From Macrostomum lignano (Eukaryota), in assembly GCA_002269645.1 (NCBI GenBank), contig NIVC01000723.1, positions 1 through 64,000 on the forward strand: a stretch of 64,000 nucleotides of DNA, given 5' to 3'. Below the pieces are notes generated by a model. It did no database searches, was not told where the DNA came from, and worked only from the letters and a program-made list of their open reading frames with translations. The first letter of the stretch is position 1. Each line of letters opens with the position of its first letter. Position numbers and translations under genes: made by a program. This document shows positions 48,893 through 54,800 of the stretch, one piece after another.

Positions 48893-51800
48893 ATGTCCTC
48901 ACTGCTCCGGGCGCACCTTTGCCTGCTGGTCTGCACTCCGGTGATCATCGATTTTGGTGAGCCTAATTAAATGAGACTTCTGTGCTTATTGTTAGCAATA
49001 ATTAGAAATTTTACAAAAATTCAATCGATTCTGCGCCCCTCCAGCTATGGGTCAGACAGACAGACACTAAGACAGACACTAAGACAGGCAGACAGAGAGA
49101 CAGACAGACAGACAGACACACACACACACACACACACACACACACACACACACACACACAGACAGACAGACAGACAGACAGACAGACAGGCAGACAGACA
49201 GACAGGCAGACAGACAGACAGACAGACAGACAGACAGACAGACAGACAGACAGGCAGACAGACAGACAGACAGACAGACAGACAGACAGACAGACAGACA
49301 CAGACAGACAGACAGACAGACAGACAGACAGACAGACAGACAGACAGACAGACAGACAGACAGACAGACAGACAGACAGACAGACAGACAGACAGACAGA
49401 CAGACAGACAGACAGACAGACAGACAGACAGACAGACAGACAGACAGTGCCTCATCAGTCCATTAGCCGAGTCCCTATCCTTAAGCCTAGTCAGTTGAAA
49501 TGCACAACACGGAGGTCAAAGTGTGCCGATTGCATGCTGCGCCGATAACAAAGAAAACTGACTGAGGTCAGGAAAAACACGAGCGCATTTCGGATACCCC
49601 GAGACAGTCAGTTAAGTGAATAAAATGCTGGACAATCTTTTTAACTATTGCGGCTGACTTGTCAGCGTGGCGGCGAGGTCGGTCGACGTCCCTCATAGTA
49701 TCCATTTCCCCTGAAATCCTGCAGCAGGCCTTTGCTTCCCTGGACACGAGTTTCCTTCTAGCATGCATGCAACTAGAAGAGGCTGAGGGCAGAAGCTGTT
49801 TCTGATGGAAAGCAGAAAGCAGCTTCCCCGAGGCGGTCAGAAAAACATCAGAATGATAATTGAAAAAGCGTCTAAACCGAGGAAGTTCTCTTAAAGTTCC
49901 AAAATTTTCAAAATCACATTGGAGTTTAACTTAGCTCTGGCTTATTTTGTACACCCTGAGTTTTTAACAGCATTGCTCATGGACTGCTGCTCATTAGCAG
50001 AAAAATTGATGTGTGTGTGTGCTTTATTAATCAGCCATGTGGGATCCTTATTCGCCTCGTTGTGAAAGATTCTGTGGCTTCCCATGTCAAACCAGTAACT
50101 TCATTTTGCTCGAGATCCAGACATGCTACAACTCTTTGTCTTAGGAGAAAAGCAAAGGATTTTTATGGAGTCTATCTGTTGCGTGAGGCAAGCACGGAAG
50201 CAAAATGCGTTTACCTCCAGACGTCATTGCCATAAACTTACTTGAGCAATTAGCCACTTCAGATAGGGTGCACTAAACAAGACATTTAAAGAAAAATAGT
50301 CTCAACCAGTTTTTGAGAGATGAAGCTGTCCAGCGAAGGCTGTAATTATTGAAACAAAGAAAGCGCTCAACAATGCCGCCACAAATTCTGAGAGGCACTT
50401 GAGCGACACTGCGCGATACCAGTTTTTCCAGTAATCCGAGACAAATTACTACTCGCTATAACAATGTGAAGAGGTTTCGCAGTTCTAGACCAGCGCATAA
50501 AAGCAAATGCACCAATGTAGCACTAAAACACATTCTTGCAAAATATACCAACCAAACTGGACTGTTTAGGGCGGGATTTAGGTTTAGTCCAAGCGAACTT
50601 GAAACAAGTGTCTGCATCGACAGTCTGGGACACTAATTACCGTGCGACAGACGATTAAGTACAACAAAACAACTTGGCAACGAGTTTAATTGCTTTGCCA
50701 AACAAGCCGTTCTCTATAAAAGTGAGGAGAAAATTTAGAGTAGTCTTTTTATCCCGCATCTGTCTAAATTGACGACACTGACTTGCCAGAGTGACCATGA
50801 AGACTGTGCTCAAAGTTCTCGTGGCGGCACTCGTGCCGCTGCAGTTCGCGATGGCTCATATCGAGTTTGAATCCCGTATCCCGAACGGCGACCGCGTCCC
50901 GAACCCGTGTCGGGACGGCGCCGTCTGGTCCGACGACAAAAACCCCTTCGGCTTCGACTTCAAAGCCGCCGGACAACAGTGGACGGCCGACCTGTGCCGC
51001 AAGGACTCGGACGGCGACGGACTCACGAATGGCCAAGAGCTCGGAGATCCCGACTGCGTGTGGACGGTCGGAGCGGCTCCGGCGAGGATGACTGGACTTT
51101 CTCACCCCGGCATCTGCCCGCTCGACTCCGCCACATGCAAGAACTCATGGACCAAGTGCCCGAAGGCGTTCAGCTGTCCAGCAATGGAAGAACCCGGTGT
51201 GACCGTGAGGAACTTTACCGTCAAACCCACCGCTGTGCCGACCTATGAGAAAATGCATCTTTGCCAGGCGTTCGAACTGAACAACACCGCCTCTCCGGTT
51301 CACATGATCGGATCGCGGCCGATCATGGTCAACAAGAACGTCATAAGGCATATGGTTATGTACGGCTGCTCGCAGAAACCCGATCAGGCTCTTTTTGACT
51401 CACCTCAGCAATGCTACATGGGCTCCTACCCAAACTGCATCGAATTGATCAACCTGTGGGGCGAAGGCAACGAAGGCGAGTGCTTCAGTAGATTCTCCGG
51501 GTTTCGAGTCGGCGGAGAAGGATTTCAATACGGCATGCTGAGCCTGAAACCGGCGAAAACGAATGGCTTCATCAACGAAGCTGGATTATCTATCTACTTC
51601 ACAAGCAATCTACGACCCCACGATCAGGGAACGCTGACGTACGGTGAGCTTGAACTCATCCTGCCGCCGAGACGTACTGTGGTCAACTATAACCACACCT
51701 GCCCGTCAGTGTGCACCAGATCGTTCCACAGTGAGACTCGGTACATTACCGCCGCATCAATTTACATGCAAAGTTACGCTACGAAAGGCCGGCTTTCTCT

Positions 51801-54800
51801 ATGGCGGAACGGAGCGCTTGTACAAGACCTGGTGCCGCTTCACGCTTACGAATACAACGTACCTAGGGTGCTTCTGTTCGACCCGCCAGTGGAATATCGC
51901 AGAGGAGACGAAATCAAGACTGAGTGCTACTACAGCACAAAAGGAAACAACCATTCGGTACTTTTTGGCTACGGCAGCAACGATGAAACGTGCCTATCAT
52001 TTATGCACTACTACCCGAACAATATACACCTTAGTCCGCTAGCCAAGCTTGAGTTTTGCAACTCCATTCACGGCTACAATCCTTGCTGGAATGACACAGG
52101 CATTACCCCTCATATTGAGAATGGCTGCAACATCACCGGTTTAATCACTGGCGATGGACTGAAGCCTGTGTACATGGCGATGTGGAGACACCAATGCTTT
52201 GTCTCGATGGGATGCAGCGCCGCCTGCCAAGAGTACATGAGCAACACTCTGTTCCCCTCCAATGCCTGCTTCGATCCGAAGAGGTCTCTGAAAGCGCTGG
52301 AGTACCTGTATATCCGATACCATAGTCCTCTGTCTCATCAGGCTAAAGGGTATATGAATTCCATGTACCCGATTTTAAAAAGCTGCCAGAATCAGATTGA
52401 GACCCTGGCACTGCTGGATCAGGCGCGACTCGCCAGTAAGCCAGCTGTCAATCCGCCAGCGGTGAAGTCAATCCCGCCTGCTGATTGCAACACAGGCAAG
52501 CCGCATGAGGAGGTGCTGACGTCGAAGAACCTGCTGGTCATCATCGTTGTGTGCAGCTGCCTGGTCTTCGCTCTGCTGGCTGCCGTTCTGCTGCTAGTTG
52601 TGCGAATTCGCAAGCTGAGGCTTCGCGATTCGCCAACCAAGCTGCGAAATGAGCAAGATGAAGCTGGAAAGGAGAAGGTGTACAATGCGTATGGTTGATG
52701 GACAATTTCTGAATTTCCAAGTTATACAAGACTTCACGTGATTCGACAACTTTGACGAATTGAAAACAGATTTTCCTGTATGTAGTTTAAGCAGTTTTAA
52801 TGGCCTGTTTTGTAACCCTGACAATTACTATTGCACCTTTCCTTGCACAGAGACAACTATAGCAATTAGATAGAAAAGCACTTTAGTTTCACAGTATTCT
52901 TCGCGCAAGTTTTGGAATATTTATACGATTGAAAAAAATTCCTCTAAAATTACAGACTAATTTCCTTTGAGAAAAATATATTTAACATCTCAAAAAACTG
53001 AAATGCCAAAATTACTCTTATAACTCTTATTTATTTCATATTTTTGTACCGAACACACGTACCGTGCATATAGCCCAGATGATTGCCCTTATACATAATT
53101 TTACAATCATCTGGGCTTTTGGTCAACCTTGGCTTGCATCGATTTACTGACCCAAGTGAATGATTTAGGGAGTATAGTTATGCTGCAATTCTCAATTTAG
53201 AGATTTTGCCTGACACTCAGGCCTTTAACTGTCTCACCAAAAGCCACTGACAGAAAAGTGATGGGATTTCTTAGATTCTTAGAAGCTGACCTCCAGTAGT
53301 GCATCTTCAATCAGGTCTTTTGTTCCTTTGGGTCTGACCTGTCGCGCGACAATGCCCTCCAAGACCAAGGCTACAGATGCAGTCTCAAATCCCAAATTCC
53401 CAACAGCTTCAGCCGCCTCAGAGACTTTGGGCGTCAACATCCGGGTGAACGTCACCCTGCCCAGCATCCAGCTGTCCTGCGACGTCACAAACGGAGGCGA
53501 CGCCGTAGATGCGCACGAAGTCCAGTTCTACTGTCCGGCCGCCGCGCCCGAGGACGACTCGATTCGCAGCCAGAAATGCTTCGGCGACTGCAACCCGATC
53601 TGCGTGATGCAGGCCGACGCCACCTGCAAGGTGATGCACCAGGAGCTTCTGCCGCCCAGAACGCAGTGCCGCAAGATTCTGCCGCTAAATGGTGCCAAGA
53701 CTGTTCAGCTTCTCGTTGACACGTCAGTCGAACGCTTGGCTGGCGAGTGGTACTGCAAGTTTCGCGGTCAGAGGAGCACCCCGGTATCGCTCAGCCATTA
53801 CAAGATGCCACCGCCGCCGCCTCCGCCTCCGGTCACTGCTAAGGAGCCGACAACTACAGCCGTTGCGAAGACGGTGGAAATGATTACAACTACTGTTAGA
53901 GGTGAGTTCAGTTTGGTGCATTGCAAAGCAAGTTTGGGTTTTGCAGTGGGATTATATCAACCTCAGATATCAATCTGGTGCTTCGGGTATCAACCTTGCG
54001 CCTCAGATATCAATCTGGTGCCTCTGGTATAAATCTAGCGCCTTAGATATCAATCTGGCGCCTCGGGTAATAATCTGGCGCCTCAGGTATCAATCAGGCG
54101 CCTCAGATATCAATCTGGTACCTCAGATATCAATCTGGTGCCTCGGGTATCAATCTGGTGCCTCAGATATCAATCTGGCGCCTCAGATATCAATCTGGTG
54201 CCTCGGGTATCAATCTGGTGCCTCAGATATCAATCTGGCGCCTCAGATATCAATCTGGTGCCTCGGGTATCAATCTGGTGCCTCAGATATCAATCTGGCG
54301 CCTCAGATATCAATCTGGCGCCTCAGATATCAATCTGGTGCCTCAGATATCAATGTGGTGCCTCAGATATCAATCTGGCGCCTCGGGTATCAATCTTGCG
54401 CCTCAGATATCAATCTAGTGCCTTGGGTATCAATCTGACGCCTCAGATATCAATCTGGCGCCTCAGATATCAAACTGGCGCCTCAGATATCAATCTCGCG
54501 CCTCAGATATCAAACTGGCGCCTCAGATATCAAACTGATCGTCAGTAGATCAATCTGGCGCCTCAGACATCCATGCAGCGCCTCTGGTCTATCAAAAGTC
54601 CTCATTGACAGCTCAATGTCTATGAATCGTACGTGCGTTTGCTCATCGCCAAAACTGCAAACTTTTTATTAAAGCAGTATTTTTCCAGTTTTTTTTCTGT
54701 CTGGGAGAAAAAAACGTCGCCCAAAAAGAAGATTCCTTACTGATTATTATTCATATTTATGTCGTCTGGCTACCCATTGTTTAAGTCACGCCACCTAGAG

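Follow-up and report, generated by a model that had tools for sequence, protein, structure and literature searches.

A maintained and probably catalytically dead paralog of the temptin/copper-monooxygenase hybrid family in Macrostomum lignano

Proteins that fuse a temptin domain to a mono-oxygenase were described in 2009 as a lophotrochozoan-specific architecture, represented by a "DBH-like protein" from Aplysia and by proteins from Pomatoceros and Lottia (Takahashi et al., 2009, PMC2762978), and a member of this hybrid family is abundant in abalone nacre (PMC6003135). Here we analyze a Macrostomum lignano member of the family, BOX15_Mlig002911g1 (hereafter Mlig002911g1), which lies in a stretch of 64,000 nucleotides (positions 1 to 64,000 of contig NIVC01000723.1, assembly GCA_002269645.1). 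We refer to this stretch as the window; all coordinates are those of the window, and all features of the gene lie on its forward (+) strand. An earlier note, made from the sequence of the window, had proposed that the gene encodes a pseudoenzyme, and our analysis supports this proposal: Mlig002911g1 is probably a maintained, catalytically dead paralog of the hybrid family. In the literature searched, we found no description of copper-less members or pseudoenzymes of this family.

Among the matches listed in our searches, the hybrid family is hugely expanded in molluscs and also occurs in brachiopods, bryozoans and Macrostomum. The same architecture, a fusion with temptin and not with DOMON, is present in the 120 listed matches save P0034, a fragment without the temptin domain. 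In these proteins a signal peptide is followed by the temptin domain, which replaces DOMON, and by the N- and C-terminal Cu2_monooxygen domains, and Mlig002911g1 has the same order and all of the conserved cysteines, with identities of 30–40% to mollusc, brachiopod and bryozoan members and 51–56% to its M. lignano paralogs. It differs from them in that five of the six copper ligands are gone and its temptin domain has no GVGH loop. The C-termini also differ within the family: Mlig002911g1, like the other Macrostomum paralogs, continues through a genuine transmembrane helix into a cytoplasmic tail, whereas the members from molluscs and brachiopods have a short hydrophobic C-terminus resembling a glycosylphosphatidylinositol signal.

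Compared with DBH, TBH and MOXD1 (human DBH, PDB 4zel), Mlig002911g1 shares the two-domain core fold and the disulfide pattern, but it has no DOMON domain and its copper ligands are lost. Its core fold likewise matches that of PHM/PAM, but the copper ligands and the lyase domain of PAM are missing. PAM spans the membrane in a type I orientation and has a short cytosolic tail for routing, a topology that Mlig002911g1 appears to share. Two residues ahead of the HxH motif, at what we take to be the position of the substrate-binding Arg240 of PHM, the family consensus has no conserved Arg. The temptin of Aplysia, a component of a water-borne pheromone, shares homology with Mlig002911g1 across the temptin domain, including the cysteine pattern, the DSDGDG..GDP motif and the SHPG element; however, temptin is a small free secreted protein, whereas in Mlig002911g1 the domain forms the N-terminal part of a 633-amino acid membrane protein and is without GVGH.

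The open reading frame (ORF) that the earlier note placed at 50791..52698 is intact and uninterrupted over these coordinates. However, its 635 codons are reached by counting from an in-frame GTG upstream of the ATG. By exact look-up on the contig, the annotated coding sequence spans 50797..52698, starting with ATG and comprising 633 codons and a stop in one exon, and the NCBI record calls a gene with exactly these bounds, assigned to cluster BOX15_Mlig002911. The ATG at 50797 is thus the annotated start, and it is likely also favored biologically over the GTG at 50791. That the single-exon gene is a retroposed processed pseudogene was rejected, because the paralogs P0002, P0125, P0003 and P0006 are single-exon genes as well.

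Losses at the copper sites carry the pseudoenzyme interpretation. In the CuH site, the HH motif has become R184-H185 (51346..51351; 51337-51360 translates as NVIRHMVM), with the first His gone in both the HMMER and MAFFT alignments. The third CuH His and its neighbors were taken by a 3-codon deletion at a site that now reads SLKP (51541..51552, from the alignments and the translation of 51526-51558), where the family has LHWNNP and the relatives read LQLHWNNPA. In the CuM site, Y323-M324-Q325 (51763..51771; 51757-51780 translates as SIYMQSYA) stands in place of HxH, both His being gone, and the Met ligand is replaced by Thr398, turning EMC into ETC (51988..51990; 51979-51999 translates as NDETCLS). 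Altogether, one of three His residues is left in CuH and none of the three ligands in CuM. The earlier note had read all of these replacements from the letters; its coordinates translate as claimed, the alignments agree with it, and the multiple alignments that it called for put no other His or Met at the ligand sites. The only new His/Met near those sites is the pair M153-H154 (51253..51258), found only in Mlig002911g1 and at 0% among 119 relatives, where the family has Thr or Asn followed by an almost invariant Tyr.

These assignments were reproduced at increasing depth of sampling. Aligned to human DBH (4zel) with HMMER, the motifs HHM, HYH, HTH and EEMC correspond to RHM, a gap, YMQ and DETC, respectively. 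In a MAFFT alignment with the best 120 database relatives, the full ligand set HHH/HHM is present in 114/120, and Mlig002911g1 reads RH-/YQT. When representatives of 50%-identity clusters were added, giving 262 sequences aligned with hmmalign, 193 of the 216 sequences that have residues at all six ligand columns carried HHH/HHM. With the full set this prevalent, its absence from Mlig002911g1 is not a matter of chance. The consensus of a profile made from 72 members of the family contains all six ligands, and this profile matches DBH at 5.4e-60; the assignment of ligand columns is therefore sound. A misalignment concealing the ligands was rejected, as pairwise HMMER, MAFFT (120), hmmalign (262) and the profile against DBH agree on the residues. 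Taken at face value, the sequence predicts that Mlig002911g1 is unable to form a canonical CuM site and would offer at most one His at CuH. We infer that it is probably not a two-copper, ascorbate-dependent hydroxylase, unlike its intact paralogs Mlig027408/017064 and Mlig028174.

The temptin domain has a lesion of its own. At the junction W44/S45 (50926..50931) a 10-codon in-frame deletion has removed the GVGH loop, which reads W-x-G-V-G-H-x4-G in the relatives and is 97% conserved among them; the earlier note's suspicion that this segment is absent is borne out by a 10-residue gap after W44. The remainder of the temptin core, that is, its four cysteines, the TSP3-like Ca-binding motif (DSDGDGxTNGxELGDP) and SHPG, is present. 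A mechanistic tie between loss of GVGH and loss of copper found no support, since other ligand-degenerate members that bear a temptin domain keep GVGH or GLGH. Within the sampled family, the combined loss of ligands and GVGH therefore appears, from the alignments, to be particular to Mlig002911g1.

Outside these sites, the scaffold is well conserved. Among the columns that are at least 90% conserved in 119 relatives, Mlig002911g1 keeps 77 of 94, including 24/24 cysteines, and intact M. lignano paralogs keep 91–94 of the same 94. The 17 lost columns comprise the GVGH loop (5), the five ligands and ligand neighbors, namely W and N after the third His, G328 after HxH, T152/Y154 and D260/S262. By sequence, the closest solved structures are human DBH (4zel, phmmer 1.2e-16) and then rat PHM. 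An AlphaFold2 model computed with the family alignment has a mean predicted local distance difference test score (pLDDT) of 84.4, with core blocks mostly at 85–98, and Foldseek searches with this model returned DBH at E 2e-22, a range of 1e-19 to 1e-22 for DBH/PHM, and a target-normalised TM-score of about 0.77–0.78 for PHM. Pfam, phmmer, AlphaFold2 and Foldseek all recover the two-sandwich copper type II monooxygenase fold, and the conserved intradomain disulfide cysteines are in place. Taken together, the alignments and the predicted model indicate that the scaffold is preserved and that the catalytic machinery is specifically gone.

Whether such a protein is maintained or decaying can be judged from its genomic copies. 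The DV1 assembly is substantially redundant, owing to additional large chromosomes in the DV1 karyotype (PMC5730564), and three copies of the gene were found on separate contigs: g1, in the window, and g3 and g2, which are 99.5% and 95.7% identical to it. Each copy has 633 codons and the same dead sites. A sequencing or assembly artefact was rejected, because the same substitutions and in-frame deletions occur on all three contigs. Between g1 and g2, the Nei-Gojobori estimates are 0.021 for nonsynonymous divergence (dN) and 0.048 for synonymous divergence (dS), giving a dN/dS ratio (omega) of 0.44, and neutrality is rejected (Fisher p = 0.006); omega is 0.48 between g3 and g2. For comparison, the intact pair P0002 and P0125 has an omega of 0.34, which is not significantly different from that of g1/g2 (p = 0.59). 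In the flanks of g1 and g2 (1.5 kb on each side), divergence is 3.2–3.6% with 11 indel events, from which about 7 indels would be expected in the coding sequence (1902 bp, 2.6% divergence); none was found (Poisson P = 9e-4). The three copies are thus kept in frame under moderate purifying selection. The earlier note had suggested a dN/dS comparison with orthologs as a check on its proposal; the one made here, between copies, came out below 1, although the constraint is not strong. Homology to an enzyme family with loss of catalytic residues, on the one hand, and maintenance with an omega of 0.44, no indels, three intact copies and conserved structural columns, on the other, together support the description of Mlig002911g1 as a pseudoenzyme.

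It is also conceivable that catalysis was lost through redundancy and that Mlig002911g1 is a functionless duplicate at an early stage of decay, its reading frame still intact either for want of time or through repeated patching by gene conversion from intact paralogs. An omega of 0.44–0.48 is fairly relaxed, the divergence of the coding sequence is near that of its flanks, the neighborhood is rich in repeats and retroelements, no ortholog elsewhere was seen among the matches listed, and gene conversion is clear in this family. For example, third-position identity between Mlig027408 and Mlig007919 is 0.82–1.0 over alignment columns 81–320 and 0.23–0.5 thereafter, and it is elevated in the temptin-coding part (columns 41–120) for every pair of paralogs. 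This elevation indicates that gene conversion operates among the paralogs, and therefore age estimates need caution. However, we consider decay unlikely. Neither indels nor stops have accumulated between copies that are 2.6% apart, omega is significantly below 1 and not significantly different from that of the intact pair, and only the active site and the GVGH loop are affected by losses, with all cysteines and most conserved columns persisting.

The age of the lineage, as far as it can be read, also speaks against recent decay. Compared with its nearest paralog, P0002, Mlig002911g1 has an overall omega of 0.30 and a dS of about 1.1, a saturated value that holds outside the 5' region. In a neighbor-joining tree of residues 200–575, it branches outside all other Macrostomum group-A paralogs with 100% bootstrap support, and this position and the dS point to long survival. 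For residues 21–199, by contrast, 60% of replicates join it with P0002/P0006, so that the signal is mosaic. Tajima relative-rate tests with mollusc outgroups gave 41–47 versus 21–26 unique changes, an acceleration of at most two-fold, and the difference was not significant with a Macrostomum outgroup.

Several points nevertheless weigh against the interpretation of Mlig002911g1 as a maintained pseudoenzyme. The constraint on it is moderate (omega 0.44–0.48), and its coding divergence of 2.6% is little below the 3.2–3.6% of the flanks. A full-length search yielded no ortholog in another species among the matches listed, the best non-self match being P0002 with 56% identity, and its long-term retention is argued from a tree in which long-branch attraction and gene conversion may play a part. 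The position of M153-H154 by the retained H185-M186 may leave room for a remodelled single-metal site. The evidence for transcription is indirect and cannot be separated among the three copies: RNA-seq data and transcriptome assemblies were the sole basis of the GenBank annotation, in which novel transcripts were filtered by reads per kilobase per million (RPKM) (PMC5730564), and the gene model therefore constitutes indirect evidence of transcription. Mlig002911 was found neither in the main texts nor in the supplements of M. lignano RNA-seq papers that were searched, and no copy-specific, tissue-level or protein data turned up. The exact protein occurs in no Logan transcript contig, and the same holds for the intact paralogs, so that this result is uninformative on expression.

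The layout of the protein suggests where a maintained pseudoenzyme might act. An N-terminal hydrophobic stretch (50797..50856; Kyte-Doolittle 1.91) aligns with the N-termini of all relatives and probably constitutes a signal peptide with a putative cleavage site. It is followed by the temptin domain (50854..51114; Pfam Temptin_C 2.8e-28, residues 22–108, with a weak TSP3_bac match), the N-terminal, CuH-bearing beta-sandwich (51217..51540; Cu2_monooxygen, PF01082, 1.4e-13, residues 143–250, pLDDT about 90 or above) and the C-terminal, CuM-bearing beta-sandwich (51652..52083; Cu2_monoox_C, PF03712, 7.6e-15, residues 288–431, pLDDT >90). All three Pfam matches exceed their gathering scores, and both sandwiches are matched to DBH/PHM by Foldseek. 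A Cys-rich, mostly helical C-terminal part of the ectodomain (52087..52521) keeps all of the family-conserved cysteines and is 35% identical to P0002. Six N-glycosylation sequons are present in the ectodomain. The chain then enters a transmembrane helix (52528..52599, residues ~578–601, hydropathy up to 3.23, helix 576–610 in the model) and ends in a basic cytoplasmic tail of 32 residues, closing with KVYNAYG as read from the sequence (52600..52695), in which a Pfam scan detected no signaling domain. A type I membrane topology is predicted, with the temptin domain and the two-sandwich part on the luminal or extracellular side.

The retention of the cysteines, signal peptide, transmembrane segment and short tail, which the earlier note had emphasized, is confirmed by the 24/24 cysteines, hydropathy and domain scans. 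However, the significance that it attached to the membrane anchor does not hold up, since this transmembrane segment and a tail with Tyr are also present in the intact paralogs. The Tyr motif recurs in the paralog tails (VYKVYDNE, AYLYNEYEN) as [VA]Y..Y near the C-termini, and it may serve in sorting. The peptide LL[VI]IIVVCSCL in the transmembrane segment is common to all group-A paralogs, and 39 nt of its coding sequence (52528-52566) are 95% identical to P0002, compared with only 34–51% in the surrounding nucleotides. As the transmembrane segment, the tail motif and several of the sequons are common to the intact paralogs, the anchor was inherited and reflects no special retention.

Given these common features, Mlig002911g1 would most likely enter the same secretory or cell-surface compartment as its active paralogs. 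There, it would most likely act without catalysis, in the manner of most characterised pseudoenzymes, as a binding protein, scaffold or decoy partner, either of the substrate or of the active paralogs themselves. Any particular partner is much less probable than the general reading as a maintained pseudoenzyme.

A more specific version of this role, which we regard as distinctly unlikely, is that the dead copy is a dedicated regulator of the copper-active paralogs, pairing with them or sequestering their substrate in the shared compartment, which it would reach by means of the common transmembrane segment and Tyr tail. With the family profile, no similarity to the C-terminal dimerisation domain of DBH was detected beyond DBH residue 495, and hetero-oligomerisation is therefore something that we only infer. 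If the regulator reading were true, Mlig002911g1, with neither its copper centers nor GVGH, would be a natural double knockout, which could reveal what the temptin module contributes to the family.

It is very unlikely, in our view, that the site has been remodelled into a mononuclear one, in which H185, M186 and M153-H154 would bind copper or another metal for non-canonical redox chemistry, copper sensing or buffering. The idea draws on the retained H185-M186 of the HHM motif and on the pair M153-H154, which occurs in 0/119 relatives and replaces a nearly invariant Thr-x-Tyr element, whose Tyr is presumably equivalent to Tyr79 of PHM, next to CuH. However, the first CuH His is an Arg, the third has been deleted along with its neighbors, and CuM, where O2 is activated, has none of its three ligands left. 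Further, single His-to-Ala mutants of PHM are already without CuH according to their PDB titles (H107A, 6alv, "no CuH bound"; H172A, 6amp, "CuH absent"), which also supports the reading of Mlig002911g1 as catalytically dead.

Finally, we regard as most improbable the specific idea of the earlier note, in which Mlig002911g1 would serve at the cell surface as a receptor or in adhesion, with monoamines or pheromones as ligands. A type I topology, a large ectodomain and a short Tyr-motif tail are in keeping with it, as are the roles of temptin in Aplysia, where it is part of a pheromone, and in Biomphalaria, where it is an attractant (cited in PMC2762978 and PMC5685644). However, the anchor and tail were inherited from active paralogs and not newly gained, the deleted GVGH is the most conserved temptin loop, the tail has no signaling domain, and "monoamine" is only extrapolated from DBH.

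Returning to Mlig002911g1 as a maintained pseudoenzyme, it is not the singular case that the earlier note implied, since about 10% of the sampled family members deviate from HHH/HHM. Among them are proteins of bivalves that have lost 3 to 6 ligands, such as KAK3101868.1 from Pinctada imbricata, in which all six are lost, and P-U1 from Pinctada fucata (AKV63176.1), which reads GGR/HHI and whose name presumably indicates a shell-matrix protein. Further ligand-degenerate members were found in Sinanodonta, Argopecten, Mytilus and Mizuhopecten (the bivalve database entries are P0165, P0239, P0135, P0174, P0216, P0169, P0093 and P0050). Like Mlig002911g1, to which they are about 30% identical, these proteins have lost ligands independently on a conserved scaffold; unlike it, they keep GVGH/GLGH where the temptin domain is present. 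Their sequences suggest repeated non-catalytic reuse of the scaffold.

Within M. lignano, the paralog Mlig007919g2 (P0006, L009:10001-11818; also P0128 and P0129) has a single change at the first CuM His, to Tyr, the same residue as Y323 of Mlig002911g1. Its other ligands and its loop (GLGH) are intact, it evolves faster than P0002, and its tail extends only a few residues after the transmembrane segment.

A copper-less member that is still under selection shows a use of the scaffold beyond hydroxylation, and the bivalve variants point the same way, so that the hybrid family joins those enzyme families from which pseudoenzymes have arisen repeatedly. As most enzyme families have dead paralogs, and as they recur in this one, the result is incremental and not very surprising. 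RNA interference is possible in M. lignano. Transgenesis is possible as well (PMC5730564), and this tractability makes the non-catalytic use of the scaffold testable and offers a handle on a poorly understood family.

Temptin plus monooxygenase-like proteins were also encountered in the EukProt transcriptome of Flabellula baltica and in an MMETSP transcript (P0259, P0205/P0263). If they do not result from contamination, the architecture would not be strictly lophotrochozoan, contrary to the 2009 proposal.

Upstream of Mlig002911g1, a TATA-like box (TATAAAAG, 50715..50722), read from the sequence about 75 nt 5' of the ATG, is a candidate core promoter. Further upstream, a block of ~85 bp (-211..-127) matches the corresponding region at L004, the locus of an intact paralog, with 77% identity.

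The neighborhood of the gene contains a Ty3/gypsy-type long terminal repeat retrotransposon pol ORF of 1383 aa at 17883-22034 (-), with RVT_1, RT_RNaseH and Integrase_H2C2 domains, and RNase H/reverse transcriptase-like fragments further downstream at 38907-40403 (-). Dense tandem arrays flank Mlig002911g1: CTCCT x158 at 40923-41711, a 61-bp unit x11 at 42297-42974, an 81-bp unit x7 at 43518-44102, a 14-bp unit x45 at 45067-45696 and CAGA x100 at 49053-49447 on one side, and a 20-bp unit x30 at 53961-54571, a 25-bp unit x31 at 57074-57876 and a 21-bp unit x46 at 62700-63689 on the other. Many of the long ORFs in the window are mere translations of such arrays. At 9235-9948 (+), an ORF with a weak match to PAP2 (phosphatidic acid phosphatase-type; 1.8e-06) may represent one exon of a larger, multi-exon gene. 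An annotated hydrophobic ORF of 206 aa without a Pfam match lies at 44270-44890 (+), ~6 kb upstream of Mlig002911g1, and is also called at the equivalent position in the other two homeologous loci (228 and 206 aa). At the g3 locus (L002:7946-21902), the temptin/monooxygenase gene lies entirely within a second called gene of the same strand, whose product has 620 aa; this suggests either a nested arrangement or a read-through transcriptional unit, and the window locus has no such call.

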